This document shows positions 3,076 to 41,936 of a DNA stretch of 64,000 nucleotides, in pieces. This stretch comes from Takakia lepidozioides. Its lineage: Eukaryota; Plantae; Bryophyta. Position 1 is the stretch's first letter. The number at the start of each line of letters is the position of its first letter. Both the position numbers and the translations under genes were made by a program. Under the pieces are notes generated by a model. The model did not search any database and was not told the origin of the DNA. It saw only the letters and a program-made list of their open reading frames with translations. The DNA lies in NCBI GenBank assembly GCA_030704615.1, contig CM060733.1:33604001-33668000 (forward strand), written 5' to 3'.

Positions 3076-3109
3076 TCAATAAAAAAACGTACAGAGCAGC
3101 TGACAGCGT

Positions 3110-4184: not shown

Positions 4185-4673
4185 GTGAGATTGATAGGTA
4201 TTTGGGGCCTTTGATCTTTCTTCTTTGCTAACGGCAGAGAGAAGAGATGGCAGAGGAATTCTTTTCTTACATGGGATTATTCTCTTTCGTCTCACGAGGG
4301 AAATGTTGGCCTCATCTCGCAACTGCTCACTTGTTTTCTGTGTAATTGAACATTGTGTATCTTGAAATTTTCGATTACCTTTCTTTTCTCACTTCATGTG
4401 GTAGACAAACAATATAGCATTGCATTTCATTCGAGCAATCTTTTGGCACTATGGGTAGTGGAAATCCCATCTCCGATATGCATTTATGGTAGGATCGAAC
4501 TTATGAATATGAGAATGGCTTCTCATACTATCACTCTCTGAGTAGCGCGCCATCCCCGCCCTCGCACCAATATCTGGAACAAATAATAGAACCGTGCTCT
4601 TCTTCTTTCCCGCCTGGAAGCTGCTTTGGAAAGATGTTTGTCATAGTGACAGGGCCACTAAGGTCAGCGGCGC

Positions 4674-4931
4674 CAGCGTTTTTTTTATTGGCGAATTTTC
4701 GCCAGATTTCGACATCATAAAATAAAATAAAATATTCTATCGCAAATTCCTAGTTTTTTCATGGATGAAAGCACCAAATTTTTCCAAATAAAAAATAAAT
4801 TATGGATGAATTCGTCAAATAAAGATGATATAAATGGATGGAAGTACGTAAATAGATGAAATAAAGTGGATGAACAGAATATATCGCAATTTTTTTGCAA
4901 AACTCTGTAGCCACTCGTGCTAAGAACACTG
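4674..4931. mobile_element. hAT-family MITE
   Basis: Terminal inverted repeats CCAGCGTTTT...AAGAACACTGG. Flanks are GTCAGC(GGC)GC and GTCAGCGC, an imperfect 8-bp TSD. Homologous to the end of the hAT remnant. Confidence 0.75.
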
Positions 4932-5517
4932 GTCAGCGCTGTTTTATGGAATCTAGTCAACCGCATTCTTCCAGGGAAAAAATAAAAACAAAAAACCAAA
5001 ACAAAACCAAGAAGAAACTAAAACAAACTAAAACAAATTAATAAATAAATAAAATTTGCCCTATAAGTTATCCTTCATTCTGATGTTGGGACGTTGGGAC
5101 TTGGGACATCCCCCCACGTGGCTCCGCCCGGGCCGAGAGGCCGGGTCTCATACTTGTATTGGCCCGGCCCGGCCCGGCTCTACCTTGGCGTTATCTCAGA
5201 GAAAAGAAAGAACTGTGCGAGGTTGCAAGTGCGCGGTTCGGTCGAAGGCTTGGAAGGCTGCGAGATTGCACAGCTCCTGAATGTCACTGAAAGATATCCA
5301 GGATTGAAAGCCATTATTTCCTGAAGATTTCATATCCTGGAGAAAGAAGAAGAAGAAGAAGAAGATTTGAGAAACAAGAACGAAAGAAAGAAGGAAACTT
5401 ACGACTTTCAGGGGGACGGGCCCGTCTGAGAGAATTCACGGCTTTGCAAGTGACTTATCTGCGAGATACTGAAGCTTGTGGGAGTAGTCTTTCTGATTTC
5501 CGTCGATATTTCTGAAC

Positions 5518-8309
5518 ATGGCGGCATCTGCTTTGTCTTCCTCATACCTGAGGCCTGCCCCGTCTATAGTTTCTGTGCTTCAGAATGCCAAGCAATGCAG
5601 AGACCAGGTGAAAAAAAGTTCACATGCCTTTGGTTCGTTAGACTCCAGAGTGACAGCCATGGTCGGTGTAGCAAGCTCACGTATTTGTTCCAATTCTTGT
5701 GAAAGGCATTCTCCATCGGCGCTTGTTGGAGACGCGGTCAAATGGGAGCAGAGGAACGTAGACTGTTGGAGGAAGCGGGCCAGGAGAGGAATATGTGCAC
5801 AGGCTGCACTTTTGGAGACTGCTGAATCTTCCAAGGTGACAATCGGAGCACGCTGTTGCATTCTTTTTCAACCTGTTACGTTCAGATCAAGAAGCAAATT
5901 TGTTCTTGTTGGCCATTCTTTGCAGCCATGGGTGAAGTCTTTGTATGAGCATTGTCAAGTGGAATTTGGAGATGAAAGCGGTGACCTATGCGCATTTTCC
6001 AGAGATTGAGTTTATGTCTTTAGTGGTGCACTCTTTCATCCAGAAACACTTGGCAAGTGTTGCAATTGAGATGTTCAAGACGTAATCTGACTGTGTCTAG
6101 TGATTTACACGCCAAACGTCTTGCAGGTTTGTGTATGAAAATTATTCTTGCTTGATACTTCTTCTTCCTTTAATAGCAATTTCCCTGTGCTATATTGCTT
6201 CTCAAAGTAAGGGGACCAGTTGATCATAGATATTCGCAGTACCCGTTCTTGAATCGGATGCCACAGGAAAGCACCATCCAAAGATAGTCCTAACAGCATG
6301 GCTTTCCACCAAGCAAGCTGGAGAGTTCATAGTAAGAACTTTGAAGTTTGGAATAGTCTGGTTTTAAGATTATGAACATCCACTTGTTATTTCTGTACGT
6401 GCAGCTGCAGACAGGAACATGGACTTGGACCAATGAAGGTCGGCCTCTCAATATCCACTACATGGAGCAGTCTGCAGGCGAAGGGCCCTCACAAACTCTC
6501 TTGCTCCTCCCAAGTCTTTCGGATGTCAGCACGACAGATGAGTGGCGAGCCGTCGCTGAGGACCTGGTGTCACAATCAGGGTCTGTGAGGTGTCGAGCTG
6601 TTGTTGTGGATTGGCCTGGGCTTGGATTGTCAGACCGACCTGCAATTGAGTACACTGTGCAGGTCCTGGAGCATTTTCTGGTTGATTTTGTGTCTGCCAG
6701 TGATGGGCCTCTCAAGCTTGCTTCAGGTTCGCAGCTGTGTATCCCCTTATAACATGAGGATTCTTGAAGGCTAGTGTTACTCCAAAACAATGAAATGTGC
6801 AAATTGGAGATTGTCAATTCAAGGCCAGACCTCATGCAGGCAGTGCTGTACCTTTGCCAATAAAAAGCTTTTTTTACTAGGTTTGATACAACTCCAATTC
6901 CTCTTACAATTTTTTAAGTCCAACTGCAACTGTTGATAGAACAAGCAAGCTGGTAAAGCATCTGTGGTCTACTCCATGCAATCATCCCAATTCAAAGGGC
7001 CAGATTGTAGTCGAACACTGGATGGATTAATAAGCAAACTCTTTTTATTTCACTTAACTGAAAGACCACGCTTCTTGGCTTTCATTCCCTTCTGTGATGA
7101 TTTTATATGCTTTTACTTTTTCTCTGCTAAATGTATGGCATTGTAGTCATGGCCCTGGTCTACTGCCGAGAACTTATTTCTCTGAAAAGGTTTCTCTCTC
7201 TCTCCACTCTAGATCCAAGAAACTTGCCATCACCATAGACTTCTGGGCATGTACACGTCCTGTGTTGAAGGAGTAACAACTGCATCTGCAATGTTTATTG
7301 CTTTCTATGAAATTCTGTCAAAGATGTGTCATTGGCCTGCAGGGGAGGCCCCAGTGATAATAGGAGGGGGTCATGCCGCAAGCATAGCAGCAAAAGCAGT
7401 GAGCAGTGGGGCTATCAAGGCACGTGCTTTGGTTCTGGTTGCACCCACATGGGCTGGGCCCCTGCCCATTGTGTTTGGCCGAAGCCCCAGGGCAGAGATC
7501 ATGTATGGCCCCTCATATAAATCCTAGCTTTTTTGTGCAATGGGATGTGTGAGACAGAACAAAGCAGAATTGGAAGGTCATTGGTTGAAAATATTTTGAT
7601 CCTGTCGTCGTACATCTTCAGTTTATCTGACTCTATATACTAGTGGAAGCATGGAATCAGGCAATGTACCTAACAGGAGAAAGCTGACAACTGCCGCTCA
7701 CAGAGAACAAACATAGGAAATGGCCAAAGACGTCTGGAGACATGGATAGATGAGAGGAGTGATGAGAGTTTTGGGGCCGTGAAACGAATGCAGTTCATGT
7801 ATTAGAGGGAGTCCATGTGTTGCTAACAAGTACAGGGGAATTTCATTGGGGGCAGATATGGGCTCTTGCGGAACACACTGAGATCCCCGGGCGTTGGGTG
7901 GGCTATGTACAAGTACCTGGTGAGCAGCCCCAAAAACATACGCCTACAGTACTTAACCCATGTATATGCCGATGCTGACAATGTGACACCTGCCGTTGTG
8001 GAGAACCGGACTGCGTTAACTCAGAGAGAGGGTGCTCGCTATGCACCTGCAGCATTTCTCACAGGGTTACTCGATCCTGTGCAATCACGGGAAGAGTTTT
8101 TGTCACTGTTTGCTGAGTTGGAAGGTAAGCTGCCTGTTCTTGTTCTTTCTACCAGTAAGAGCCCACGACGATCACGTGCAGAGATGGAGGCCCTGAACGA
8201 GGCCAAGGGGGTCACCAAGTATGTGAGACTCCGAGGAGCACTACTTCCCCAGGAGGAATACCCGGAAGATGTCTTTCGTGAACTCCAAGTGTTTCTCAAG
8301 GAGTTGTAA
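5518..8309 (+). CDS. Plastid-targeted alpha/beta-hydrolase (At1g74640-like). Exons 5518-5835, 6405-6726, 7343-7502, 7856-8309
   Basis: Ser/Ala-rich transit-like N-terminus, then LPSLSDVSTTDEW, DWPGLGLSDRP, GGGHAA, APTWAGPLPIVFG, ARYAPAAFLTGLLDPV and GALLPQEEYP. GT-AG introns are phase-consistent. Confidence 0.9.
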
Positions 8310-8445
8310 AACTCAAAATGGGTCGTTAGATCCGATGGGAAAACACTAGCATCATACAGCAGAAGGATTGGTGCTTAATGCTGTATTGATTTGTATCTTT
8401 GTTCAATATGTACAATCAGATTCAGTCTGTAGATTGAGTGATAAT

Positions 8446-9650
8446 TCATAGCAAGCCATTAGTGAGGGATGCCCAGTGTGGACAAGCAATGCAAGGTGTT
8501 TGCTGCATAAACTTTCTGATATTTGTAGTAGTCAGATCAGCCATAGTAGAAACCGCACTGCTTCTTGAGCGACCATACCCTGTAGAAATTGCTGCACTTA
8601 CCATTGGATGCCTTTGTATCAGGTATCTAAACCCGTGGGGCATCAAGTCACATGAACAAGGTTGGAAAAATCTCTGGTCTTTTCTCTGTAACTGAAAAAA
8701 GGCATATCTGTGTAGAAAGCTTCCATTGACCCCTAATGTCCTAAAGAGATTCCGGCAAAAATCTTCAGATTCATGATCCAAGATCATCTCTCTGGCCATA
8801 TCTTTCCGATTTCTTTGATCTATGGATTTGACCTATTGAATTATTTTGCGAACTACATTTTCACAGCGTTTCACCTATTGGATCTCAAGATCATAACTTT
8901 TTGTGAGCTGTAACTTGGAATTCAGATTAGGCATGCGGCCCACCAATGTAACTTTGAATGCATCACGTGGAAAGCTCAACGGAGGTATGCCAAACTCGGC
9001 TGAACAGGCAGCCACATTAGAACGTCTTTTTAGTGTTCACCTTTCCACACGATGCATCTTTCAATATCTGACCATAAGGAAAAGAACTCACGTGCTGAGG
9101 CAAGTGTGATAGTGCGCATTCCATTTCAACAACATGGTTCCTAAAGGGACCAGTGTACATTAAATCTCTCGCCCTAAAGATGATAGCATCAGTTCCCGCA
9201 AAGTTTGAGTGACAGATCTCATGTGCCATCTGCTATCCAGAGTACTGGTATCCAGAGCATACGATTATACTGTAGGGTAAGGACTGAGGAAATTCGTCCA
9301 GTTCACTTCTGCTTTCTTGATAGCACGCAAGCGCGTTCTCACAGTGGGTGCGATGCAGCCACCAGCCTCCTCAAGTAGGGAAAGCGGCAGGATGTCGAAT
9401 GGGTCCCTCAACTTTACTCATATCCTACCCCCAAACCTGAAATGTCTGTGTGACACAGGGTTAAGGGACCCATCGTCATCTCCCCATAGCTGGTTGGCAG
9501 TCATGCTACCCATTTGCAGCCGAAAGTGAGTCTGGCAACACTTGCTCTTTGATCCTGCTGCATTACAGTTGAAGATGGCGAATACCAGCTCAGAGGTACA
9601 AAGTATTGACATGACACAGCTTCTATGGGTACCTGATTCACTTTACTTCT
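8446..9650 (-). pseudogene. Degraded coding-like region, possibly an F-box gene remnant
   Basis: Minus-strand RDPFDILPLSLLEEAGGCIAPTVRTRLRAIKKAEVNW (~9300-9415) resembles an F-box. Many stops surround it. Confidence 0.3.
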
Positions 9651-15540: not shown

Positions 15541-15725
15541 CCCGGTTGGATTGAGCATTGAGTGTCAACCAGGTGATTCACTAGTACTAGCACTTCTCGA
15601 GATGATCAGACTTCTCTTCCTGCTAACTTACACCTAGACTTGGCCTATCGGAGATTTGTCTACAATATACATGTATGCAACTGCCTGATTGATTTCAAGG
15701 AGAACTGAGTGATGTTCTCCTCGAG

Positions 15726-16877
15726 ATGAGAGGCATCAACAAGAACAGTCATTCTTACGGGAACTCAAAAATTGCAAAGGCTGCTCTAAAGGAGGCGGTA
15801 TCTAATCTCCTATTCCTAAATGTGACACACGCAAAAATCAAGAAGATCGTACACAAGGTAGTGATAGAGGCATCTGAATCCCTCCCTCGCAAGCCTGTGG
15901 TCTACAACGCATGCTTTGGCGAGTTCGAATTTTCGGAAGCCTTCAAAGCATACGAGTATGAAGATCCCAGTTCATGCACGGACGATGGGTACTCCGTCGA
16001 CCGGACCTTGCTATACGACACGATTTGTGCATTTGGAAAGGCCGTATGTGGTCAGGCGCGGCTGATCGAGCAACACACTCGGTGTGTGTATGTTTATCGG
16101 CTGCATACCGAGCTGCGAGAACTACAACGGCTGGAGGATAACACGACCTTCATGCGCTCTACGGGCCAGATCATTGAACAGCGGATATGGAGCAAGAAGT
16201 TTGGGAAAAATGACGACATCGATCTTTGGACTCTCGTACACTCCGATCGTGTCGACGAGGAATTCATGTCCAACATGTCTAAATGTGCTCTGACCAAGGC
16301 AGCGAATGCTGTGGAGGCAGAACTCTCAAGCCTGCAAAACACAATCACAACCGAGATCGCTGACCTCATGACGGAGTTTGGTGACGAAACTCTGACAGCA
16401 GCCTACCGCTTTCTGGAAGCTGCCCGTCCAGCACCCTACCACATTGCCAAGGTCTGTCAGAAGCTCGAGTCAGGGAAGGGGGCCGCCTTCGAGAAAGCTC
16501 GCAAAGAATGCAAGGACACAATTGTGTTCGCTATGCGCTTTCCAGAGTACTGGTACCTGGATCCTCGTCATCAGCGTCGCGATGCCTTTGGTGATGTTCA
16601 CGGGAATCTGGTCCTGGATGCATATGCATGTGCAGCTTCGATCGTCAAAGGGTGGGTGCTGTTTCCACCTCCCCTCTACCCAGACTTATCCAAGATTGCA
16701 GCCACTGTGCACGAAGCCGTTGGCTTTCTCTTCGCCGGGTCACAGGACTCGCTCTTGAAAGTGGAATGGGTGCCCCAGCTCGCCGACTACCATATCACCA
16801 ACTATGATGGCTTTGAAACAGTGAATTGGGGGTACCAGAACTCGAATGCTGAAGCTGGATTCTACATGACACCCTGA
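15726..16877 (+). CDS. Intronless 383-aa hypothetical protein with phage/NCLDV-like terminal motifs
   Basis: Uninterrupted ORF. VVYNACFGEFEFSEAF and LLKVEWVPQLADYHITNYDGFETV recall a viral hypothetical family (recalled, not searched). Confidence 0.65.
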   Translation: MRGINKNSHSYGNSKIAKAALKEAVSNLLFLNVTHAKIKKIVHKVVIEASESLPRKPVVYNACFGEFEFSEAFKAYEYEDPSSCTDDGYSVDRTLLYDTICAFGKAVCGQARLIEQHTRCVYVYRLHTELRELQRLEDNTTFMRSTGQIIEQRIWSKKFGKNDDIDLWTLVHSDRVDEEFMSNMSKCALTKAANAVEAELSSLQNTITTEIADLMTEFGDETLTAAYRFLEAARPAPYHIAKVCQKLESGKGAAFEKARKECKDTIVFAMRFPEYWYLDPRHQRRDAFGDVHGNLVLDAYACAASIVKGWVLFPPPLYPDLSKIAATVHEAVGFLFAGSQDSLLKVEWVPQLADYHITNYDGFETVNWGYQNSNAEAGFYMTP

Positions 16878-18041: not shown

Positions 18042-21000
18042 TTAGCGTGGAGATATTTCGAGGAACTTTGCTAAAACTGCATGTCGTCGTCCAAGAGATA
18101 TTGCTACCCAAAGCCATCCCACACACACCTGCAGCACACACATGAATTTAAGGACTCCTTGGTCAAGGAAGAAAGCAGAGAAGGTCAAATAGTGCCACGC
18201 CCTTATCTCTTGTCTGCACTTTGTCAAAATACAGGGGACAAGACAACAGACTAATGCTGGGCTCCAGCTTTAAGAAACAACAGAAGAGAACATACTTATG
18301 TGCTTGATTTGAACCCTGCTCCCTCTCTCAATAGTCCCCACTCAGGGCCTCCTGTGGACTTTCCGATGTCTTTAATTCATCATTCATTCTTCCTCTCTCC
18401 TCTCTCTTCTCTCACATCCATCTTCTACACTCTAAGCAACCCCCATCGCTTTGCTAGTTTCACTACTTTGGAGGAGTTTAAAGAGCGATAGATCACACAA
18501 AATAATCTACAAACTCCTTGCAGAAGCAATTTGCTACTGTGCAGCAATAGTAAGCCAGAGTGCAACAATAAAAACTATCCCATTAGTTGCACATTCAATG
18601 GAAATGGACCCTACCGGCAATGCGCAGATGGCAACAGCTGAAGGCCCCTGCAAAAGCAAGCCTTCCATCACCTTGTAAATACCTGCTGCAGCGGCATCTC
18701 CCAATCTTTGCACAAATGTGTCAATGCACACCTGGACAATCAAGAGAATTGGTATCTCTCATAGACCATACCTCATCCTAAAGTAGCAGAATTTGGATGT
18801 TTGACAGGCAGAATATGGGGAGCAAGAGGGATTGAGCAACCAATGAGGGCACTGATTTCTTTTATGTGACCCTTTCTGTTGTATACTCATTTTGAAACAA
18901 ACCACCAGTAAAAGAGAAACCTGCAGCACAATGACAAACATAACAATGCTGACACTGGTCTAAGCTTTTCTCTGCACAAATTGGTTCACCATTTTCAAAG
19001 AGAGATTGAGAACTATTCACTGACATTCGGGCAGGGCACAGAGGTATTCACCTTGGCCTTATACTTCTCTTCACGAGTAATGACTGTGAAGAGGATCTCC
19101 CTGGCTGGTCTTGTTACAACATAATTGATCAACTGTAAAAAGCACACAACATTGATGTGGCAAGCACTCACTGCACCGATCCTTTTTTATGACATGTCAG
19201 CTTCACAAATCTTGTCCAAAGAGCACCATAACTGAAGATGCTTGTGAATGTTTTTAATGTTTTTTAGGGGTTCCATATCAGGGAGTATTACTTCTCATGA
19301 CCTACTGCTTAAACAATAAGGGATCCTTGGTTGTGTCGTGTAAGAATCTTTCAGCCCGCAAAGAAAACAGACAGCCTCCTGGTTTAATTCCCCCTGAGCC
19401 ATATCAGCTAAAGGTATGATTTTCTTGCCTCCGTTAGCCACAAGAGTGGTCTTTCAAGGATTAAAATTTTCTCTAGTACAAGTATTCTTTACAAAGGCCC
19501 TGGATAGGGGGTGACCCCCCAAGGGGAAGAGGCTCCAATTTATGCTGACTTCAGTCGGTGTTGTCTCTCTCTTCTCTACAATCAAACGACCTAAAACAAT
19601 TGTATAGAACAAAAAACTCATGTAACAAAGCCTTACTTGCGGACCTTGCGAGTGGCCTCAGAGACAGCCACAACCAGTGAGGATGGTGATGTAGCAATTG
19701 AGGTCAAATTCAGGAATGCCACCACAGGTAGTGCACAAAGGGCTGCAGTCACTCCAACCCTAGTTAGAAGCCGCCCCTGCAACCAAATATTATCTCCCAT
19801 TAATATAGCAGCATCTCACATCCTATTACTCTCCAAAGAATGCTAGGCATAATTTGCAGGTCTGAAAGAAAGAAAGAAACTTTATAACATACAAAAGCTC
19901 CCTCAAAGCTGAAATCCCGCAGTGCATTGTCCAACTCTAACTGGCAGCAACACCTCTACAAGAGAGGAGAGAAATCAGGCACTTCCCTCCAAACATTTAT
20001 CAACACTCAAAAGTGGTGCTGTCAGGAAAGTATGCCTGAAGATGTAATAAAATACCGTGACAGTGAGTTGGCCAATGAGGATAACAACAGCAGTCAAACT
20101 GTTGATCTCTGCCAGTAATATTCTCCTTCCCACAGGGTCTTGGACGGTTCCCGCTACCACAGCAGATCTCTGAGCAAAATAATCTGACTTTCTCAGCTGG
20201 CTTCACACTCTTCTCACCATTAAGCATCTTCTGGCTCATCGAGTAGCTAAATCCCAGTACATACACACCTTTTCATACTATGGACTGAACCATCTTTCTT
20301 GTAACTTAACAAAGATACGATCGAAATAATGTTGGACACAGGTAAGACTGTTCTGTCTCTAAGGATCCCCAACCACAGCCAGACACAGTTAGCAGCAAGC
20401 AACCAACACATATCAATCTATTTTCACCCTACTGGTACAGGAGGTTGGAAACATGGAAAAAAAAACATCTCTTCGCTGATTAGCAGTGGAAATTACCTTG
20501 TGAGTATATTTATTCAATTTCTTCTCCACTCTGATGTGAGGGATTTGGGAAACCAGCATTTGTCTTCCGGGTTACTGGTTAGAGGCAGCAAGAGAACAAA
20601 ACTTCTAGAATAAAGATGGAGAGTTCAGCAACCTTCCATGGTAAGCTTCCTACATGGAAATTAAGAAGAATCTAGAACAAGGATAAGGAGATTAGAAAGC
20701 TTCCTATGGAGAGCCAGTAAAGAGCTAGGGAAGCATGTTCAAGTAGGGGTTTTGCATATCCAAGCGAGAAAGTTGGTAAAGAAGGCCAAGGAAATGGTTG
20801 TCCTGTTTGTGAGGGAGGCCAAGGATGCAAGTGCCAAGGAACCAAGTCTGGACAAACCTTCCACTCTTAAGTTGCTGTTCTATGCTCAAGTAATGAGAGA
20901 GAAGGGAAAAGGCCTGGGCACCTCAAAATAGAAGAAGGATGAGATGACAGCTGTCAGCCAAAGGAATGCACAAGCATAAAGGAGGTATGTCGAAGCCAGA

Positions 21001-24000: not shown

Positions 24001-24227
24001 CTGCCTTAGATGATGTGAGATTGCGCTACAGCAACAGCCAAAGCTCTGTTTTTCATTATCCCTTCGAGGGTAGTTTAGAAAAAGGTATACATGACTGAAA
24101 TGCTGAGAACCACATTTTGCACTAAGCTGGCACATGAAAATGTATCCAGGTCACCTTTTTCAGATCATCAGACTGACTCTTATCCATATGTACTCATAAG
24201 ACGTTGTTTGCACCCACGAGAGAGAGA

Positions 24228-24264
<37 letters not shown>

Positions 24265-25612
24265 CGAATTTAGCTTAAAATAGAGCCTCTTCCCTTTGCA
24301 GGTACTGACCCATTTTGGGGTGGGATCCTATCCTCTGCCCCTTGCTGTTGGAGCACCCACAAGATAGCATATGGCTGTCTTGACAATGTTAAGCAAGGGG
24401 ATTGCAAGGTGGCCTTTGTGGGTTCTGAAACCTATTACACATTTTATATTCTGTGGAGAAATCTCGGCATCCATTGACTGGAAGAAGAACTTCAAGATGT
24501 AAGTCCCCAACATGTCTTTATTTACCAAGTTGTCATCTGATTCGGAAAACATTCATGACCCTAAAATTCCATCTGCCTCTGAATTCCACACTGTAGACAT
24601 CCCTCCACAGGAGCTTTAATGATATAACAAGGGCTTACCCTCCCTTTAGGAAGATGTGGAAGAGAGAGCAAGTAGGATGAGGCTGGAGCAGCCAGCATTG
24701 TTAGCACCAGGGATGCTGAAAACAAAGCTGGCAAAGATCCTGTGCCCAGTGACAGGGCCGCCTCATCCCTCAATGGCAGGACCACAAAATATGCACTCAG
24801 CAGCTGCCACAGCAAAGCCCACAAACAAACATGCAAAAGTTAGCAGAAAATTAAAGAAAATAAGAAGAATTACAATTTGGTTTGTTGTTCTGCAGGTGAA
24901 CACCTGCATATGCACACTCCCAACACTATCTGCATGTTGCAAACTTACTGTATCTTAGTGGTAAACCGGAACGAATTATCAAGTGTTGATCTTCGAAGTA
25001 CCGAGAACTGCTCCCAACCACAACGCAGGGGAGAAAGTGCGAACAACTTGAGCTGAATGGTGGATGAACCTGCAACTCTCTGTGGAGACATCCCGACATA
25101 TTGGGATAGCCATTTCACTGCCATAACAGGTACACGCGGTGCAAAACCGCAGGACCTACAGAACTGTAGTAACTCAAATTAGGGGCCTAGGCAATGTGCC
25201 CGCAATGTTCAAGAAAGCCCGGACAGATAACTACGATTCTCGGGTCACATCACGTAGGTTGCGAATAAATTTGCAACGCAGACTGAATTGAAACCAAAAA
25301 CCCAAGTCTTTTCAGCTATCCTCAGGAGTAGTTCAATGCTCAGGGATTCACAAACAAGGTGTGCGCTGGGAGCCATAATCTGATCTTTACCACAATTCCT
25401 TGGGGATGTAACCTCTGCCGACCAAACATTGGGAAACAATTAGATCTTTGCTATATCTTTAATGGCTTGGGACAATGACGATTTGACAAATGCAGGCTGA
25501 TTGGAGAACTTACAAAGAAAAAAGCCGAGAATGCATGCAGCAGCGCCGGAACTTCATGTTGATGCACATGCACGAACCGGCTTACCAGCGCCTCCACATG
25601 TCTGTTGGTCAT
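18042..25612 (-). CDS. TLC ATP/ADP-transporter-like MFS protein (At5g05310-like), about 13 exons
   Basis: Exons read MTNRHVEALVSRFVHVHQHEVPALLHAFSAFFF (25612-~25514), LLSAYFVVLPLRDEAALSLG, ALVILYRFF, NLFTISAMWAR, RLFGFVGAGATLGQLVGS, SSFFYFE, AEINSLTA, YVVTRPAREILFTV..EEKYKAK, IDTFVQRLGDAAAAG, and last exon VCVGWLWVAISLGRR..SPR*. Confidence 0.9.
19495..19571 (+). mobile_element. Solo ~75-bp copy of the RLE-LINE 3' structured end, in an intron
   Basis: AAGGGGAAGAGGCTC..TTTATGCTGACTTCAGTCGG followed by a TC tail. Flanked by a near-perfect TSD, TTCTTTACAA (19485-94) / TTCTCTACAA (19572-81). Confidence 0.6.
24219..24552 (-). mobile_element. 5'-truncated RLE-LINE 3' fragment with structured 3' end and (TC)n tail, in an intron
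   Basis: ORF remnant ..HLAIPLLNIVKTAICYL..RG*, then TAGGATCCCACCCCAAAATGGGTCAGTACCTGCAAAGGGAAGAGGCTCTA..TTCGGTCGG and (TC)n. Confidence 0.65.
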
Positions 25613-27521: not shown

Positions 27522-29607
27522 CAGCCCTTGAGAACGTTATTGATAATTATTGAAGGGAAAAAAGTAAACCCTTACATGCCCATAGGCCGCCATAAGGCAA
27601 AGACTCACGAGATTCGTGATGGATGCCCCGAAGAGCAGTAGCCAGTATCATTCCAGGATACTGATTGCCTAACGGGCAAATTCTTTTGTTCCCTATGGCG
27701 CCCTTAGTTGTATTACCTAGTAATTATCTGAATCTTAGCTACAACCAGTTTTGGGCTTATCCTTTACCCATTGTTTATACACATAACATCTTTGAAATTT
27801 TATTTTTCCCCTTTATCAATGTAACATATAACCTCAACTCTATGTTTTGAGGTGCCTCAAAATATTAGTTTGAGCTTTAAGAAATAAATAAGTAAGAATA
27901 TTACCTGCTGAGGTGGTGGCGGCACTTCGTCTGCTGAAGTGCGCACTTCAGCTTACATATATATATATATATATATATATAACCTAATATTAGTATATGA
28001 AAATATATTCTGTTAAATTTGTACATACCTGTACATATCCGTATACATACCACCCTAGTATGTGAATTCCTTTTCAGACCTACTCCTACCTGGCATCCGG
28101 GATGTCCCACATGGCAATACCCCTACCACCCACGTACCCCACCCACGCCTGGATCTGCACGGGGCCCTACCAGCTTGGCCTTAAAGGTCCATTAGACATA
28201 CAAGTCTGGTATGTCAAAATGGACATACCAGTACACCACTGATCTCAACTTGACAAAAAAAAACAAAACAAAACAAAACAAAACAATCATCTCGTTTTTT
28301 GTTTTTTTTTTTTTTAAAGAGAACAGGGGCTCTTGGCAGAACTTTAATATGTTTATTAGGGGGAAAAAAAAATTAAAACCCCGTTGAACACCATTGAGGT
28401 GGTACACACACCGTAATCAGTGATCGTTGAAATATCATAATCATTACTAACTACATTAGTATGTGTACATCACTCGCAAAACCCACAAATACTACCACTT
28501 TCTACCATCAACTGGACCAGATTCTAAAATATTTATTTATTTACAGACAGCTTGGTCTCCCTATACCTTCTCACCAACCAAATTTGTATGTCATCATCAG
28601 AGATCCACCATCTTGTTAGTGCACTTATAAAAGAAATCGTTGATGTTGTATCATCTTTACCGTTGCAAATCCATATACATAAAGTTCAATCTTACCCCGG
28701 CATAATAGGTTATGACATAGCAGACCATCTTGCTCAACTTGGTGTCATTGAGCCAATTGCTAACCCCTCGACCAGCCCTATCCACCAGTCATACACCTAC
28801 CCGTTTTGGTTTCTATCAACAAGGGCTACATTCCCGACCATAGCACCTATACGGAATTTGCACATACACATTCAAGGCGAGATCAAACTACTCATACAAG
28901 AATCCCGCACCTTCAGAAATTCCTACATATCTATGTGGGTCTCGTCCCCGCATCTGCTACATAGTATGTCCAATCATTTTTGGACATCCCCTAGGGTTAC
29001 TGATACACAAATCAAACAAACTTTGAAATTTCGGTATGGTCAATACGTGGGCAATCAACGACGAAACTTGTTCTGGCCATTATTATATCATAATAAACAT
29101 TGTGTGTTATATTCATCCCAAAATCCCCAAATAGATACATGGCCACACTTACTTCTCCACTGCAACCACCCTATTCATGGGTTGCGGGTAACTAGATATA
29201 ACCAAGGGGTTAGACAACTCTATAAAATTATCACTTCACATCCGAAATCCAAATGGTTTAACCTCATCAATGCAGGCACGTTCCAAGGTTGCCCACCGGA
29301 CCACCTTATATCCCCATGGTTGCTATCGTGTGTATTGTCGCACACCTCACTTCGGTAAGCTCCCCTTCAAGTCATAGTTACTCGATTTGATGCGCGCGTC
29401 TAACTCCCAAACTGGCCGCCGGGCCAACTTAGAGCTTCGACTGCTCACCGGGACATAACGGTCCCCCTTTGCTCCTCCACAAGACCCTCTCTCAATTTGG
29501 GCCTAATGGAATTCCCTTTGGTTGTTGGCAGTCCGGAACAGCTCCCCACACCTTGGTCGTTTTCCGGCTCGCGCGCTTACTCATTAGTTTTTGGTCACCA
29601 ACGGGCT

Positions 29608-32600
29608 TGTAGCAAGGACGAGAACATGACTGAACACAAACAAGAGATAAAACTAGAGGTACAAGGCTAGACAAGAAGTCAAGGTCGGCGTGGCCGAATG
29701 CACGATGAGTAAATAGGAATCAAGACAATCTTTATAACGATGAACAAGAGTACAAGATATTGGAACACGACTTGAATATTGGAATGCTGGAAACTGGACT
29801 GGAGTACCAGATACTGGAAACTGGGCTAGGGTACTGGGAACTGGACTGGAGTACTGGAAACTGGAAACAAGAGTAGCTTGAACTGGTGTTGGCGAGACTG
29901 AAGAGTGTCCAGTCTTGCCTCCTATATATACTGGCTATTAAGAAGCTTCCCCAATAATAGAGGTTTCTTGCTGGAGAAGTTTCCAAGATTAAACAAAAGT
30001 TTCTTGATGGAGAAGCTTCATTAAACAAAGGAGGTATCTTGATGGACAAGTTTCCTCCAAAAGAAGCTTCCTAAGTAGTTTCCCAAGTTACTCTTGGTAA
30101 TTTGGTAAACTCCCGGTAACTTGGTAAGTCATGGTAAATCATGGTAAGCCATGGTAACTTTCGGTAACTTGGTAACTTGGTAACTTCTGGTATTTACTCA
30201 TGGTAAGTTTTTCTGGGCTATGTCCGTGACATCACCCCATCCTCCAGCGCCGAGCTCCTCGAGGAGCGGTAAAATCTTGGACTTGCTTAGAGTTGGAGAA
30301 AATCAAAAATCCGGCGAATAGTACTTGCCAAGTATTCGGCTCTTCGTTCTTGACTCAAATGATTTATAGGTCTCTGCAACCATCGATAGTGTCCAACACC
30401 TTGAACTTGGGACCACATAGTGATTTGAGCATTCTGATTTTCGAAACTGCTTTCAAACATGATTTCGTTGCCCTCTGGGTCCGAAGCCTCAACCTCCAAC
30501 AGAATTATCAGATTTGAGTAGGCTTCACTTGCCGTCGTACGGGGTTCAGACGAGGAAGTACGCGTCGCATTGGTGGCCCATCGTCTCGATAGCGTCGGCG
30601 TGATGTTGAAGGTCGTGAGAGTCAGAATGGCTGATCTGGTAGCTGGGTAAGCGACAACTCCAATGTATCTGGTTCCTGTGACTCCATACTGCCAATACAA
30701 GATGCAAGAGTGCTGGAAGTGTAGCTATATATACTGATGTGTGGTGCTCCTCCCTCCTTAGCGTGTATCAGGTACATTAAATGTGGAGTCTTCACCTTGA
30801 AGCTAACTTGACTGACATCATCGTTGTGACGTCTTATTGACGTGTAGCTCGGGGATTAGCTGGATATCGTTGATAAAACTCTTAGACTTTGTCAGATGCA
30901 TTGGCGAGGTTGGATGAAGGTTCCCACGTTCGTTCGCTGATGTCGTAGCTTTTCTAATGTACGAAATACTTAAGACGTTTATACTTGATGCGAGAGTCTA
31001 GGACTTCGTCGACTTCATACTCAAGTTCTTGATTGACTTCGACTGGTGGAGGTGGTACGGAGACTCTCCCTGGAATATTTGATGGATGATACAACTCCAA
31101 TAATAAAACATGAAAGACTGGATGGATGCGCATACTTCGTGGGAGTTTAAGCCGAAAACTGACCGGATTGATGGTCGCGAGGTTTGTATGTCTCGTCGAA
31201 GAAACCACACACGATCTCCGACCTTGAACTGGGGTTGGAATTGGCGACGTTGATCTGCATACTCCTTGTATTGTTTTTGAGCTTCTGCGAGGTGGGATGT
31301 AAGCTCCTTATGAATCGTAGCTAGATGAGTAGCAAGGTTTTCTACAGCAGGGCTTCCAACAGTCTTCATGTGGAAAGGGTTTGCTCGAGGATAATGACCA
31401 TAATTGGAGAAAAATGGAGTTTGTTTGGTCGAAGAATGTATAGTGTTGTTGTAGGCAAACTCAGCCAATGACAGAAGGTCCGTCCAATTATCTTGGTGAT
31501 AATTTATCGTACAGCGAAGATACTGCTCCAAAATCTGGTTTACACGTTCGGTTTGACCATCAGTCTGTGGATGATTAGCTGTAGAGAGGTTGATCTTAGT
31601 ATCCAATATGTGAAATAATCCCCTCCAGAAATTTGATATGAACTGTGGTCCTCGATCAGATACGATGTCCTTCGGGAGTCCATGAATGCGGTACATATTA
31701 TTGAGGAAGAGTCTTGCAGTTTCCTCGCCGGTAACCGTCTTATTACATTGAATGATGTGTCATCTTCGTAAAACGATCTACAATAACAAAGATTGAATCG
31801 GTGGTCTTGGAAATTGGAAGGTCCGTAATAAAGTCCATAGACACGGACGACCATGGACCCTCGGGAATGGGTAATGGTTGAAGAAGGCCGTAAGATCGAT
31901 GTCGTGGTCCCTTCGCTCTAGCACACGTGTCACAAAATTTTATGAATTTTTTCACGAGTTTCCACATCTGCGGCCACCAATAGTCCCTGGATATCAACTC
32001 CAATGTTTTGTTGAAGCCGAAATGTCCTGCAGCCGGAAGATCATGACATGTTTGAAGAATTCGAAGTTGCGTAGGTCCTGGATTGACATACTCCATCTCG
32101 CTTAACGTCAGTTTAGCTCCCTCCAATAGATGTCGTCACTCCTCAAAAGCATCGATAATCGTTAGAAGTTCTTTGTCATGGATTTCATAATTGATCTCCG
32201 CAGCGGAAAATTTGCGAGAACGAAAACCAACAGGGTGGAGTCGGTCATCTGTACCGTATTGCGAGAATACCGCGCTAAGTGCAAAGTCCGATGCATCTGC
32301 TTATAAGAAGAATGGTTTAGATGGGTCTGCATGTACCAGTATTGGAGCCGTTGTAAATGTCTGCTTCAACCTTTCAAATGTCTGGTCAGCCTTCTCGTCC
32401 CATACAAATTTGTCATTCCATGTGAGTCGTGTCAACGGTGCAGCAATTTTGGAGTAGTCATTGATGAAGATTCTATAGAAATTTGCAAAGCCCAGAAAAC
32501 ATTGTACATCTCGGACCGAAGTTGGTTTAATCCACTCGATGATGGTTTGTATTTTCTTCTGATCCATAAAGACGTCTTTGTCCGAAAAAAATTCGACCTC

Positions 32601-34938: not shown

Positions 34939-35264
34939 GTAGGGCGCCTTGGCAGGCGGCTCCGATCCCGGTATCAAGATCCAGTCCATCGATATCGCAA
35001 ATTGTGAAGTTCTCACATCCCTTCCAACTCTCCAGCTGAAGAGGAACATCGGACGCCAACCTCATCGTCAGTTGTGGTTCTCCTTTGGCAGAACGCACTT
35101 CAATAGAGGCCCCCACATCACTTGTCGGGAGCCCCAGCTTCCATGCTGTTGCCGGTGTCATGAAGGAGTGCGACGCTCTTGTGTCCACCAACAACGACAC
35201 GTTAGTTCCGGAAATTATTCCACTCACAAACATTAACTGACTCCCTTTACGCAAGGGAGTCAGT

Positions 35265-35350
35265 TATATAATATACGATATATGATGCCAGCCGGAGCTA
35301 GCGTAAATAAGAGTCTCTTCCCCTTGCGGAACTGTCCCCTCACAAGAGTA
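35265..35350 (-). mobile_element. Solo ~80-bp RLE-LINE 3' structured end, inserted between gag and protease of Gypsy A
   Basis: GGGGACAGTTCCGCAAGGGGAAGAGACTCTTATTTACGCTAGCTCCGGCTGGCATCATAT plus a TA-rich tail; close match to 37771-37829. Confidence 0.75.
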
Positions 35351-37851
35351 GTTGTCTACCTTGCAAGTCTTGGTGACCACCGCTTCCACCAAGCGACTGA
35401 TGTAATCTTCGGACAGCTCCGTGGTCGCCCGAGTCATGTTCAATTGACGGGGCTTCGCGCACTTCTTAGCCATGTGCCCGGGCTCCCCGCAATTATAGCA
35501 CACCCCATCAAAGGTCGTCTTCTGTTCACCATAAGCCGTCGCACCTGATTTTCCTTTCGGAGCACCGGGTGCCGTCTTGACGTGTGAAGGCCCTCCCTTC
35601 GATTTCCATGTGCCATTGTCGCCACGTGGCCTATCCCACTTCTTTTCCGATCGGAAGGAGTCACCCTCCCGCCCAGTCTTCTTGTGGTTCAGCTCCGTAC
35701 GGCCTTGTCTTTCGCCCCTAGGGACATCCGAGAAACATTCAGCCCTTTCAATTGCCTCGTTCAAAGTCTTAGGTGGCTTCTCCTCCAATTTCCGCTTGGC
35801 CCATGGGGCCAATCCCGCCACAAAGTTGAAGACCATTTTTGGTTATGCCATATCCGCGACTTCGAGCAACAGCACATTGAAAGCCTGAACATATCCCCGA
35901 ATGTCATCCGTTTGCTTCAAATTCCTCATCTTGTCTCGGGTGAGCCAGGACGCGTTGAGAGGCACAAACTGTCTTTTCATAAGTTCATTGAACCCACTCT
36001 AGCTCAAGGTTTCGGGGTTTGGGCCTTGGTCATGAAGGCGTTTCTGCCACCACTGTTGAGCATAGCCTCTCAAATAGGTGGGAGCCACTTCCACCCGATC
36101 CTCATCACTCAACTTGGCCGCCCGGAAGTACTGCTCTAGCTCCAAGAGCCAGGTGTTGAGTGCCTTCCGATTTCGGACACCCTCGAAGGTGTCGGGTTCC
36201 TTAGGCTACACCTTAAACTTTGCCTTAGTGGAAGTGGCATTAGCCGCCTTCAATACGTCTTTCAACGTCCCGCCAAACTGCGCCAACAACCCTTCCCAAA
36301 AGGCTGCCGGCATGGAAGACATCTATTGGTCTGGCGGAGCCTCCGGGAAGTCCTCGGGCTCCGACTCCCCAGATTCCTCCCGTTCTTGAGCGGCCTCGCT
36401 TTCAAAAGCATGAATCGCCTCCTCAAATTGCCGCTTCAATGATACGTCGTCCCCATCGGGCTCACCAGATTATCATCTTTCGAGTCGTTCCGCTTTCGCT
36501 TTGGCTTGCCCGACCCCATGATGAGGCCGATCTCAAGGACGATCGCGTACTGAACTCTAAGTTCTGATACCAAGTGTCGCACACCTCACTTCGGTAAGCT
36601 CCTCTTCAAGTCATAGTTACTCGCTTTGATACGCGCGCCTAACTCCCAAACTGGCCGCCGGGCCAACTCGGAGCTTCGGCTGCTCACCGGGACATAACGG
36701 TCCCCTTTTGCTCCTCCACAAGACCCTCTCTCAATTTGGGCCTAGGGGAAATTCCCTTTGGTTGTTGGCATTCCGGGACAACTCCCCACACCTTGGTCGC
36801 TTTCCGGCTCGCACACTTACTCACTAGTTTTTGGTCATCAACAGGCTTGCACCGTTCTCGGGGTTACTACTCCCTATATATACTTCTGTGACTGTCCGCA
36901 GGGGTTTCACAAACAACACCATCCTTTTATGGCGAACCACCACGAAAACCCTCGATTCCCATTGATGAGTCACGGTGAGTCTTGGCCCACCCACCCTGGC
37001 CCCATTGGACCGTGATGAGTCCCAAGACTCCCCACGACTCCCACCACAAGGTCTCCGCCCGATGGTGAGTCCTATGCCACCCCCACTAAGACCCGCTAAG
37101 GTACCACCACTCCTCGTGGACCCACCCCCACCGCAACACGGTGTACGGGGCTCCACCTAGTGAGAGCCTCCGCCTCCTTGAGTGCCCAAGGCACTCAAGG
37201 GTGCTTCAGCCCCCGTTCCTATTGTTGCCACTGCCCCCACCACAGGGGCAACCTCCCTTTGTGTCCCAACCCCCCGCCCCCAAGACAAAGGGCGGCAACA
37301 TGTATGCTCCCAAGGGCACATGTGCCTTTGCTTGGCAAGGCTATGCCCAAATATTTTGCTAGTCCAGGGACTTCCTGCACTGACATAACCGCTGACATAA
37401 CCGCTTCCATCTCTCAAAATAATTTTTTTGGAATTCGCATTCTGCCATGATCGAAATCCAGATCAATCAATTATGTACAAACACTAAAATATGACCCAAT
37501 CATACCATGCCCTCCATCAGCGAGGCTGGAACACGACACCTCTGACTGTCATCACTGTGGGTCTCAGGGGTGGTGCTCATACCCATAATATCCAAAGTTT
37601 GAAAGATAATCCCAACCTACCACCCAAATATATTATACCTCTACTACGAGCCTTACATTTCACGGCTATTACATCACTCACATCCCTAATCCTCAATAAA
37701 CGTAAGATTGAAAGTGGCCAGGTAGCCACTGTGTAACAGGTTACGGTGCAGATAGGACCCACCTCCAAAAGGGGGCAGTACCCGAGGGGATGAGGCTCTT
37801 ATTTACGCTAGCTTCGGTTGGCATCATATAGAGAGAAGAGAGAGAGAGAGA

Positions 37852-37964
37852 AGACTCCGGCCGTAGCCAGCGTAACTAAGAACCACTTGGCCTTACGGCT
37901 ACTGCCCCCTTTTGGGGGTGGGCCCTATAATAGGAAGGGTGTCATGTGGGACACCAGATAACCA

Positions 37965-38007
<43 letters not shown>

Positions 38008-38720
38008 TGCTATGAACCCCCTGAGTTCCCTGGGGGACCCTGGGTGCACTAGAGGGGCTAGCTTCGAGTTGGCGTTTGATGATGATGATGGCTGTTAGGG
38101 AACGGAGTGATGTAAGATGGATTGCTTTGAAACATTGATGGATTGGGAGAATGAGAATTTTGAAGTTATCATGTAAATCATTGATACTGGCGTTGTGTAT
38201 GCCACCTCGGGTTCCGGCAGTGATGACTGTGAGTGGGTCAGTCTTCCATATCTGCCGACGAATTGCAAGAATGAGTGGGGCGTATTTTTGTCGTTTTTCC
38301 AGGATTGAATCGTGGGGGTATCGATCATGGCAGAATGTAAACTCGATAAAGTGGATAATGAACTGCGGGGATGGTGAACTAGGTGGCGAGGCTTGATTGG
38401 GTAGTCCCTGGATAATGAATATGTCCGGGCAGAGCCGGGCAGGGCATGAACAGGGTACTCGGGTGTATTTGCATGGTAGAAGGCATGGATCTGGTGGCCT
38501 CCCTTGGAAGGTACTGGCGTTAATGAGTGTGAACCATCGGGTTTTGGCGCGTTTTGTGAATAGTTTGTGAAGATGTCAAACTGCTTGGTTGTGTCGGGTG
38601 ATATAAAGACCATGGATAACCGGGTGCGTGCACTGGCTCAGGAGGTGTGGCCAAGTATCACGTGCATTGTGAGTTGTGGAGCACAGTGGGCAGTAAGGTG
38701 ATGGAAAGAGATGTGGCGTC
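37852..38720 (-). mobile_element. Second Dualen-like RLE LINE 3' fragment, convergent with the first
   Basis: YCPLCSTTHNARDTWPHLLSQC..RHNQAV..ARLCPDIF..IEFTFCHDR..KYAPL..PLTVITAGTRGGIH..KRQLE. Structured end at 37852-37927 and (TA)n at the 5' junction. Confidence 0.8.
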
Positions 38721-39499: not shown

Positions 39500-39897
39500 T
39501 TAAGGACGGTCTCTATGGCCTACCTACCCTTGTCACTAGACTGCAATATAAACTCGGGGTGGGAAACCTATCTTTGAATAGTAAACAGATGCAGAGAGGA
39601 ATAAAAGATTCTACAATCAAGAACATAGTCTCAGCACCTTTGTTCACCAACTTTCAAAATCTTGAGGCTGAGCCTAAGCCCCAACCCTGTTGGGATCTAA
39701 CTTTTGGGCTGCTCACACTCAGCAGGTTGATGCAAGGCCTTTCTTGAGGATATCTGGCCCAACTAATTTTTTGTATCAAGGTAAGTCATACTATTAGAGG
39801 GAGCCCCTCTCGAAGGTAGTTTTTGGTCCCTTTTGTTCCACCCAAACTGGGCGCATGGCCTGTGGCCACAAGGCTACGGCAAACAACGTCTTATGAG

Positions 39898-39943
<46 letters not shown>

Positions 39944-40326
39944 ACTAGACTGAAATTTAAATTCAGTAAGAAGCCTACCTTTGATCAGCAAACAGGCGTA
40001 GAGGTGAAAGGGGTATAACAAATGCCGGTTGTGTGGGCAACCTGAAGACGATATCAACTTTCTGATTCATTGTCTTGGGTACTCTCTGGTGAGAGTTACC
40101 CTCTTCAATTCCATCAAATTGTTCTGTCTATAACCAACTTTGACAATCTTGAAGGGATATGATCTGCATAACTTGGATCAATTGTCTCTTTCAAGTTAAG
40201 TCATACTACCGGCATCAGCCCGTGACAAAGGTAGCTTCTGTCCCTTTCTCTTCTGCTCAAACTGGGCGCCGGGTCAACGGCCACAAGGCTACGGCAAACA
40301 ATGTCATATGAGTACATTCTCTCTCT
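39500..40326 (+). mobile_element. Two head-to-tail RTE-X-like LINE 3' fragments (~39500-39902, 39941-40326) separated by (TC)n
   Basis: Homologous to 55500-56063. Both end GGCTACGGCAAACAA(C/T)GTC(T/A)TATGAGTACA followed by (TC)n. Confidence 0.75.
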
Positions 40327-40519
40327 TGGAGGGGGTTCTGTCATAGCCATGTCTGATGCCAAAAGACTGTGTATTGAAAATGAAATACGTTGGGCATAAA
40401 ACTTGGGGGAAAAGGGTAGAAGAGATTTTCAAATATCTGAATGATATCAGTCCAGATGAGGCTGACATGGAGGGTTTCTGTCAAAGCCATGTCTGATGCC
40501 CAAAGACTGTCCGTTGAAA

Positions 40520-40660
40520 ATGAAGTTAGGCATGAACTTCCCTGAACTTCTTTCCAGTTTATGACATCTTGACCAATAATTCCAGCTTTGATGATTTCAC
40601 CATGAACCTCTTGCCCTTTTCCAGGATTGCCAGGTTTGTACACGTCTTGCAAATACAAAC
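40520..40660 (-). pseudogene. PPR fragment
   Basis: KGQEVHGEIIKAGII resembles a PLS-PPR L motif. Confidence 0.45.
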
Positions 40661-40664
40661 CAAC

Positions 40665-41936
40665 AACCTTTTTTGAGTGAAGATATAGGTATAGAAAAGT
40701 GGGCCTTCTTATTTTGTTCATTCCCTGGATAATCTGACTTAGAGTGAGGATCTGGTCAGTGCAGCCGGGCCATGGTGGTTCAAGTTTATGTCTTGGCCAG
40801 ATTTTTTACACTATATATATAGAGAGAGCCCGTACAAACTAGTTAACATCTTTGTGCAATTGGTAGTAGTGACAACACTGCTCTTTGGCCTTCCATTTGC
40901 TGTAACTGGTGCCTACTCATGTGCCTGTCTCTTAACAATCTCAAGGTTGGTCCTTAGTGATTCATGACGCCTCTGAACTTCAGTCCCAGCCAGTGTTCAT
41001 ACAAAGTTTCCTTGCTGATAATTTTGGAAGTGCTCATGCCATAGTGCGTCAACACCTTTTTGAGTGAAGATATAAATGTAGGAAAGTGGGGTTTTCTTCT
41101 TTTCACTTTTTCCTAATTCCTTGAATAATCTGACTTAGAGTGAGGATCTGGTCAGTGTGCAGCGTGGCCATGGTGGTTCAAGTGTATGTCTTGATCAGTT
41201 TTTTTACAAATACCTTCTTCTGAGCCCTTACAAACTGGTTAACATCTTTGTGCAATTGATAGTAGTGACACCATGGGTCTTTGGCCTTCCATTTGCAATA
41301 ACTTGTGCCTAATAAAGTACCCACATCTCTCAGTAATGTTGAGGTTGGTTCTTAGCCTTCACGTTGCCACTGAATTTCAGTCCCAATCAGATACTTTGTT
41401 CATACCAAAGTTCCTTGCTTTCAATTTGGAAGTGCTCACGCCATAGTGTCATAAGCTTTTTTATCCTCCAAGATATAGGAAAGTGGGCCTTTTTATTTTG
41501 TTCCTTCCCTGGATAATCTGACTGAGAGGGAGGATCTGGTCATGGATGCCTAGCCATGGTGGTTCAAGTGTATGTCTCGGCCAATTTTCTTCCAATCAAC
41601 CTTCTTTTCACCCCTTACAAGCTGGATAACATCTTTAATGTGCAATTGGTACGTAGTGGTGACACCACAGGTCTTTGTCATTTTTTGCTATAACTTGTCC
41701 CTTCTCATGTCCTGTCTCTCAACAATCTCAAGGTTGGTCCTTAGCCCTCGTGTTGCCTCTGAATTTCAGTCCCAGCCGCAAAAGCTCCTTGCTGATAATT
41801 AGAAGTGCTCACTCCATAGTGTGTCATGTACAAGCCTTTTTGAGTGAAGATATAGATATAGGGAAATGGGTCTTTTTTTTTCCCTTCCTGGATAATCTGA
41901 CTTAGAGTGAGGATCTGGTCATGGTGGTTCAAGTAT
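40665..41936. repeat. Diverged tandem repeat of ~390-bp units (about 3.3 copies)
   Basis: ATAATCTGACT(T/G)AGAG(T/G)GAGGATCTGGTC recurs at ~40728, 41124, 41512 and 41891. Confidence 0.85.

Follow-up and report, generated by a model that had tools for sequence, protein, structure and literature searches.

A conserved three-way-junction module at the 3' end of a Dualen/RandI-like LINE family in Takakia lepidozioides: a candidate recognition tag for target-primed reverse transcription

Why should a sequence of about 75 nucleotides (nt) recur five times within 64 kb of a bryophyte genome, with diverged letters and what appears to be a single fold? The question is raised by a stretch of 64,000 nt from Takakia lepidozioides (assembly GCA_030704615.1, contig CM060733.1, positions 33,604,001 to 33,668,000, forward strand), called the window below. 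A preliminary description of the window proposed a structured RNA at the 3' end of a family of long interspersed nuclear elements (LINEs) encoding a restriction-like endonuclease (RLE). It was suggested to be either a module recognized by reverse transcriptase (RT) or a processing or self-cleaving motif. Here we describe the module, its relatives and its possible role. By analogy with other LINEs, we give a probability of about 0.65 to the reading that it is the folded 3' RNA end of a Dualen/RandI-like LINE and would act in cis as the recognition signal for target-primed reverse transcription, as in LINEs of the stringent type. It is most likely an uncatalogued form of a known kind of signal, the LINE 3' recognition tag.

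Related sequence was found at each of the five places originally proposed. A profile built from the five copies with nhmmer matched the window at +37752-37827, -37928..37851, -35358..35282, -24331..24255 and +19493-19564 and nowhere else (E 1e-17 to 1e-23; next-best match in the window, E 2.8). A covariance model (R1) gave 59-88 bits for the same five and had no other match in the window. The copies are named C1 (+37752), C2 (-37928), C3 (-35358), C4 (-24331) and C5 (+19493).

The module is a three-way junction, formed by a closing stem (P1) and two hairpins (P2 and P3), followed by a linker, a terminal hairpin (P4) and a tail. Read 5' to 3', the first half consists of the 5' strand of P1 (AGRRCC), the letters CAC, P2 with 4-5 bp and a loop of AAAA or GAAA, GC, and AGUA. 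The second half consists of P3 (3 bp, GNRA loop), GAA, GA, the 3' strand of P1 (GGYUCU), the U-rich linker UUAUUUAC, P4 (6 bp, UNCG-type loop) and a short-repeat tail, which is (UC)n in most copies. The hairpins quoted in the preliminary description are present in the sequence: CTCC-AAAA-GGGG, CCCCC-AAAA-GGGGG and ACCC-CAAAAT-GGGT for P2; GCC-GTAA-GGC, CCT-GCAA-AGG and TCC-GCAA-GGG for P3; and GCTAGC-TTCG-GTTGGC, GCTGGC-TACG-GCCGG and GCTAGC-TCCG-GCTGGC for P4. CAGT follows P2 in four of the five copies, and the repeat tails are there as described, ATCATATA in C1 and C3 and (TC)n in the other three. The parts of the copies are as follows.

37752..37822, plus strand: C1 module, found by the profile and the covariance model
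37754-37759 and 37794-37799, plus strand: 5' and 3' strands of P1 in C1
37762-37775, plus strand: P2 hairpin of C1, loop AAAA
37777-37780, plus strand: AGUA of C1
37781-37788, plus strand: P3 of C1, loop shortened
37789-37791, plus strand: GAU of C1
37800-37806, plus strand: linker UUAUUUAC of C1
37807-37822, plus strand: P4 hairpin of C1, loop UUCG
37823..37830, plus strand: tail of C1, ATCATATA
37856..37927, minus strand: C2 module, found by the profile and the covariance model, with P2 CCCCC-AAAA-GGGGG and P3 GCC-GUAA-GGC
37871..37856, minus strand: P4 of C2, loop UACG
37854..37831, minus strand: (UC)n tail of C2
35287..35358, minus strand: C3 module, tail-only, lying within the gag-pol open reading frame (ORF) of a Ty3/gypsy element and interrupting it; 5' part of P1 unrecognisable
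35286..35279, minus strand: tail of C3, ATCATATA
24259..24331, minus strand: C4 module, tail-only, P4 decayed
24258..24218, minus strand: (TC)n tail of C4
19493..19559, plus strand: C5 module, tail-only, with P2 CCCU-GGAU-AGGG and P4 GCUGAC-UUCA-GUCGGU
19560-19577, plus strand: TC-rich tail of C5

The tail of C1 runs into a GA/TC tract (37831-37854) that is the (TC)n tail of C2 on the opposite strand, and the two copies are thus arranged tail to tail on one tract. No LINE coding sequence was found upstream of C3, C4 or C5, all of which are short tail-only copies. C4 retains ~21 nt of upstream untranslated region (UTR) resembling that of C1. GTGGGTGC occurs on both of its sides as a candidate target-site duplication of 8 bp, at 24360..24353 and at 24217..24210, the latter exactly at the end of the (TC)n tail, and we read C4 as an ordinary, strongly 5'-truncated retrocopy. 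For C3 and C5 the best flanking repeats were no better than chance. A perfect 13-bp hairpin (AACTGACTCCCTT-GCGTAA-AGGGAGTCAGTT) lies on the minus strand at 35232-35262, within the gypsy gag-pol ORF and ~15 nt 3' of the ATCATATA tail of C3.

In a MAFFT alignment of eight copies that was not fitted to the structure, 86.5% of the pair cells hold standard pairs. Slid controls, in which the 3' partners were moved by 1-3 columns, gave 35-63%. Both sides have changed at 9 of the 20 pairs (2-5 in the slid controls), and the covariation score is 0.370, compared with 0.07-0.23 for the slid controls; none of 500 shuffles reached it. With two distant relatives (L003 and L014) included, the paired share of cells is 87.5% and compensation is seen at 12 of 20 pairs, in a 10-sequence alignment that was made by the covariance model and leans towards it. 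The conserved, covarying fold of the preliminary description is therefore supported: compensatory changes occur in all four helices, the slid controls lie far lower, and the architecture is kept, with different helix sequences, in relatives of only ~40% protein identity. At the same positions of P2, different copies have C-G, U-A, A-U or U-G. A pair of P3 is G-C in C2, U-A in C4 and C-G in the others, and pairs 4 and 5 of P4 switch among A-U, G-C and G-U. Pair 3 of P4, whose neighbours covary, is U.G in all seven copies with letters there. Unaided, RNAalifold predicted P2, P3 and P4.

Variation across the genome was surveyed by aligning contigs of four public runs to 37480-37955 at 80% likeness; being Logan contigs and not raw reads, they give no view of RNA ends or haplotypes. 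In the helices, pairing is maintained or repaired by the majority variants listed (37756 G>A, 37757 A>G, 37764 T>C and 37766 C>T), and those listed in the loops yield GNRA (GAAA with the variant at 37913, GCAA with that at 37895). The module is very abundant in the genome, and its positions are covered by more than 100 distinct contigs. Summed contig depth is 220,000 over the 5' half of C2, 43,000 over the 3' half of C1 and 500-9,000 over the end of the ORF. The module was also present in one run labelled RNA by guess (X5), a label that is unreliable.

The pairs could in principle be GC-rich palindromes with no selected RNA structure, the copies being alike by shared descent or by retention at the DNA level, through second-strand synthesis or a target-like sequence. 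Several results weigh against the fold and can be taken this way. The alignable sample, 8 close and 2 distant full copies, has modest statistical power, and common descent can by itself lift an alignment above column shuffles, with no structure involved. Chance pairing is easy where, as in many of these pairs, C-G is combined with a G-rich 3' strand, and the +1 slid control still has 60-63% of its cells paired. Single-sequence folding energies did not differ significantly from those of shuffled sequences (z -1.9 to +1.3). Finally, P1 was not predicted by RNAalifold on the close copies; it is the weakest helix, with ~80-84% of cells paired and mismatches in C1, C4, C5 and L008. These points are opposed by the changes seen on both sides of pairs, from C-G to U-A or A-U in P2, from G-C to C-G and from C-G to U-A in P3, and from A-U to G-C in P4. 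In addition, L003, L014, L011 and L004 have different helix sequences at the same places, and P3 tolerates insertions: in L003 and L014 its arm is prolonged by 40-50 additional bases, which fold in continuation of it. We regard the absence of a selected structure as quite improbable. A DNA hairpin would give the same covariation, and sequence alone leaves strand and molecule unsettled.

The closing stem of the preliminary description is borne out only partly; the pairing is AGRRCC with GGYUCU. P1 is likely to be real, because distant relatives fold it with other letters and because majority variants restore the pairing in C1. Unconstrained minimum-energy folds have the closing stems GUGUCC/GGACAU in L003, GGAGUUC/GGGCUCU in L014 and GAGCCC/GGGCUC in L011, and those of L003 and L014 also contain the P2 hairpin and the three-way junction. 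The genome majority variants at 37756 (97%) and 37757 (92%) convert AGGACC of C1 to AGAGCC, which pairs perfectly with GGCUCU. A pseudoknot between the loop of P2 and the U-rich linker was sought by eye and dropped on finding the pairing inconsistent across copies.

The most conserved letters of the module are those that flank P3. AGUA, unpaired and just 5' of P3, is kept as A in 9, G in 10, U in 8 and A in 8 of the 10 sequences. GAA, just 3' of P3, is kept as G in 9, A in 10 and A in 9. GAU in C1 and CAA in C2 are private deviations: the aligned contigs read A at 99% and G at 92% of depth, respectively, and at C1 position 37791 (T>A) GAA is found in 99% of contig depth. In the sarcin-ricin loop a sheared pair joins G to the A beside the helix, the U is paired with A, and the G is bulged. 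The module resembles this arrangement in that a Watson-Crick helix with a GNRA loop is flanked 5' by AGUA and 3' by GAA. Its polarity matches that of the ribosomal AGUA-C-GAGA-G-GAC, and the pattern is also found in L003 (AGUA-G...C-GAA) and L014. It differs in having three base pairs, not one, between the bulged-G module and the tetraloop, and in its context, the junction of a retrotransposon tail. The sequence tolerance of the sarcin-ricin or loop E bulged-G motif has been described (PMC8450098). Judged from polarity, AGUA/GAA would form the non-Watson-Crick pairs of such a motif and a three-dimensional S-turn, a kind of module that is a common protein-docking surface.

Which element, then, does the module belong to? 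The LINE copies of the window are all 5'-truncated, and the coding remnants are the following.

28528..29355, plus strand: X, the putative C-terminal part of an RNase H domain, a CCHC motif and the start of an RLE domain, of the same LINE group
37323..37733, plus strand: Y, the C-terminal half of an RLE domain (CPNI...GLRGG...LILNKRKIE)
38027..38716, minus strand: Z, a CCHC zinc knuckle and an RLE remnant (RHNQAV, CPDIFII, IEFTFCHD, KRQKY, GTRGG)

The stop codon of Y lies 18 nt before C1, which thus stands directly 3' of the RLE ORF remnant. Z has an in-frame stop at ~38578 and is followed by a (TC)n tract and then by C2. X is broken off and has no 3' module. C-terminal CCHC and PD-(D/E)xK RLE signatures were recognized by eye in X and Z (CxxC...H...C, RHN, CPDI, IEFTFCHD and KxxKY). 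Placement of the module at the 3' end of an RLE-LINE family, as first claimed, is supported by C1 directly and by C2 behind (TC)n and ~50 nt. Directly after the (TC)n tract that follows Z come ~48 nt of 3' UTR (TTGGTTAT...) and then C2. Because this tract and UTR intervene, C2 is probably a separate 5'-truncated copy that landed in the tail of Z.

Neither X nor Z gave a homologue in word-indexed protein searches. Exhaustive searches of representatives and profile searches succeeded, and an exhaustive search of protein representatives with the RLE domain gave 299 homologues. The longest of these, P0001 and P0004, match Pfam RNase_H (E 1.7e-14 and 2.7e-14) upstream of CCHC-RLE. X aligns to the RNase H region of both and has no Pfam match itself. 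RNase H upstream of CCHC-RLE is the order reported for Dualen/RandI among LINEs with RLE (PMC4640811). We therefore describe the element as a Dualen/RandI-like LINE, an assignment that rests on RNase H, CCHC and RLE together with repeat tails and 5' truncations.

Three observations tell against this picture. Firstly, neither an RT nor an apurinic/apyrimidinic endonuclease (APE) domain turned up in the window or the retrieved loci, including upstream in L002 and L020, so that assignment to the LINEs rests on C-terminal domains, repeat tails and truncated copies. Secondly, Z is itself followed by another short 3' end (38010-38075, minus strand), which the model does not match. It has the hairpins GCUAG-CCCCU-CUAGU and CCCCC-AGGGAACUCA-GGGGG, then GCUCUUC(UC)n, and may be a deletion derivative of the module. 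Thirdly, the module was undetected in the available 3' flanks of L001, L002, L005 and L009, that of L002 being cut ~100 nt after the stop; the module therefore belongs to a subclade only.

Some features of these elements stand apart from the module. X (29336-29609) and Y (36575-36849, extending to ~37323) share a segment of 91-93% identity, within the RLE domain between FQGxPPD and CPDI, which Z does not have. In Y it brings ~750 extra nt that are proline-rich in all frames, and in X it starts with GGTAAG. It could be a subfamily insertion or an intron-like piece. A stretch resembling PCIF1_WW (PF12237; E 7.8e-7 and 1.3e-6, below the Pfam cut-off) lies N-terminal to RNase H in L002 (3001-5148, P0004), L001 (P0001) and L020 (7526-8740). 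In L020, a metagenome-derived plant contig, the LINE remnant has upstream of it a DUF7869 protein (5243-6343, E 1.8e-37) that contains a GHTHDDID motif and is probably the transposase of a DNA transposon.

Outside the window, the assembly of one public run contains three further close full copies of the module (L007, L008 and L010). Two distant full copies (L003, which is the same as L020, and L014) have the same architecture, and their proteins are ~40% identical. L014-L019 are one locus in six samples and were counted once. Two more copies, L004 and L011, run off the ends of their contigs. JGI metagenome contigs, scanned for the exact pattern of the P4 region, gave one unrelated chance match only (L006). 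In C1, L007, L008 and L010 the stop of the RLE ORF is separated from the start of the module by 18-50 nt, and the end of the module from the tail by 0-8 nt; the arrangement is the same in L003 and L014. The distance of 0-8 nt to (TC)n, ATCATATA or (CTT)n holds for C1-C5, L007, L010 and L003. Nucleotide identity is 63-80% in the module and 51-69% in the adjacent coding end; the module is at least as conserved. In L010 the (TC)n tail of one copy is immediately followed by a second LINE copy, 5'-truncated (1225-1500), which repeats the order Z-(TC)n-C2. A word GGTTAC or TTGGTTA recurs in the UTR between stop and module (C1 37740-37750, L007 1410-1428, L003 2575-2598) and in the consensus of loose contig ends upstream of C2.

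The 5' edge of the module is sharp. Many contigs diverge from the locus within 3 nt of it (37928-37930), and letter agreement upstream is 0.37-0.41. The drop would be explained by diverged UTRs of many subfamilies or by many tail-only or borrowed-tail copies, which the contigs cannot separate. A self-cleaving or processing RNA that cuts at the 5' edge or sets the 3' end, releasing an RNA of ~80 nt that is then copied, would account for the edge and for the tail-only copies, which are three of the five in the window. A three-way junction with conserved letters, GAA among them, also recalls the hammerheads of retrozymes and Penelope-like elements, where GAA lies beside one helix in a mobile element. 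The CUGANGA box of the hammerhead is absent, however, since the junction reads GCAGUA. The site where a hammerhead would cleave is wrongly spaced, with three letters instead of one between P1 and P2. The earlier remark that the hammerhead core is missing was correct: the junctions are CAC, GCAGUA and GAAGA, and no Rfam hammerhead matched. Ribozyme families remained unmatched even at E<=10. In C4 and C2 the module is preceded by 21-48 nt of UTR; the 5' ends of these copies are thus ordinary truncations without a fixed cut, and a sharp edge is also expected if subfamily UTRs are too diverged to align at 80% likeness. With the whole module kept in the DNA copies as well, the self-cleaving option of the preliminary description finds no support, and we judge it highly improbable.

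Recognition by RT fits the position of the module, its tail, its retention in the shortest copies, the platform-like junction and the fixed U.G. By analogy with stringent LINEs and R2, the RT of the element would bind its own transcript through the module. The (UC)n tail would base-pair at the nick in the target DNA, frequently in a GA/TC tract already present or in an older copy's tail, and reverse transcription would begin at the tail. Every copy, however 5'-truncated, would then carry the module. In the window, C3, C4 and C5 are tail-only copies that retain it, and module depth in the contigs is far above ORF depth. The tail-to-tail placement of C1 and C2, the position of C2 behind Z and the tail-after-tail copies of L010 suggest frequent insertion into existing GA/TC tracts. 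Such insertion is not obligatory, as the flanks of C4 show.

Any RNA that acquired the module could be copied in this way, which would explain the great excess of the module over the coding part. We propose, tentatively and as something short of an even chance, that the module is a self-sufficient portable tag, whose attachment to any RNA would suffice for a Dualen-type enzyme to make a copy of that RNA in plant DNA. If true, this would explain why tail-only and borrowed-tail copies are in such huge excess and would provide a defined RNA-protein pair for a LINE with dual RLE/APE nucleases in land plants. A tRNA-like head, the sign of a short interspersed nuclear element (SINE) partner, was sought in the window and not found.

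The tails of these elements are (UC)n or AUCAUAUA and not poly(A), and three hairpins with very stable GNRA and UNCG tetraloops stand at the extreme 3' end. The module might therefore mainly protect or localize a transcript that has no poly(A), by blocking exonucleases or by aiding export or translation, instead of recruiting RT. Stability alone needs neither near-invariant junction letters nor an invariant U.G, and it leaves unexplained why tail-only fragments become DNA copies. Protection as the main function seems unlikely to us. The two roles do not exclude each other, and RNA stabilization is compatible with RT recognition as a second role.

Structured 3' ends are the means by which most LINEs select their own RNA, and few have been defined, among them those of R2 and the L2 tails of fish. 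No Rfam 15 family, among them the R2 3' UTR, LINE 3' elements, hammerhead, twister, pistol, hatchet and hepatitis delta virus-like models, reached its gathering score in the window. A permissive Rfam search of 37700-37960 returned noise only (E 0.8-7.5). R2, likewise a LINE with RLE, has a structured 3' UTR that serves as the point of entry for target-primed reverse transcription. The covariance model of the R2 3' UTR, the family R2_retro_el, which we take to be RF00524, did not match the module. The 3' RNA of R2 is about three times longer than the module, and R2 inserts in ribosomal DNA and is not known to have a repeat tail.

A close parallel in arrangement is found in fish. The proteins of the stringent LINEs UnaL2 (eel) and ZfL2 (zebrafish) recognize a 3' stem-loop and repeats (Hayashi et al. 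2014, PMC4176376). As in the present module, the hairpin stands at the very 3' end, with short tandem repeats immediately after it, and is retained in truncated copies, and this tail is the part borrowed by non-autonomous partners. The sequences are unrelated, and the module adds a three-way junction with AGUA/GAA. The fish elements belong to L2 and ours is a Dualen/RandI-like element in a land plant. Protein recognition has been shown for the fish LINEs, whereas we infer it here.

The algal RandI/Dualen LINEs, with RNase H followed by RLE, belong by domain order to the same clade and also have microsatellite-like 3' repeats. In Chlamydomonas these repeat tails are common to the LINEs and their SINE partners, such as SINEX, and recognition of the 3' tail by RT is implied by this sharing (PMC3747384). 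The Chlamydomonas tails are (ATT)n, (CTTT)n and (CTATTT)n (PMC3747384), in contrast to (UC)n in the land plant. We found no description of a secondary structure for the Chlamydomonas RandI/Dualen tails.

The general picture of LINE function is not changed by the module. Its host clade, described mostly from algae so far, carries an RLE and, by report, an APE nuclease, and represents a key point in LINE evolution. The compact fold, backed by covariation, offers concrete targets for mutation: the GNRA and UNCG loops, the sarcin-ricin-like platform and the fixed U.G. The covariance model can be used to annotate short repeats of seed-free plant genomes, thousands of which have no other explanation. 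RT-based tools for insertion in plants might also use the module as an RNA handle.

The remaining content of the window is that of a land plant, with a PPR gene, Ty3/gypsy elements with chromodomains and remains of hAT elements. An intact ORF of 394 amino acids at 15693-16874 has no Pfam match. A tandem array at 39765-41924, with a period of ~390 nt and 4-5 units that are 76-90% alike, adjoins remnant Z.

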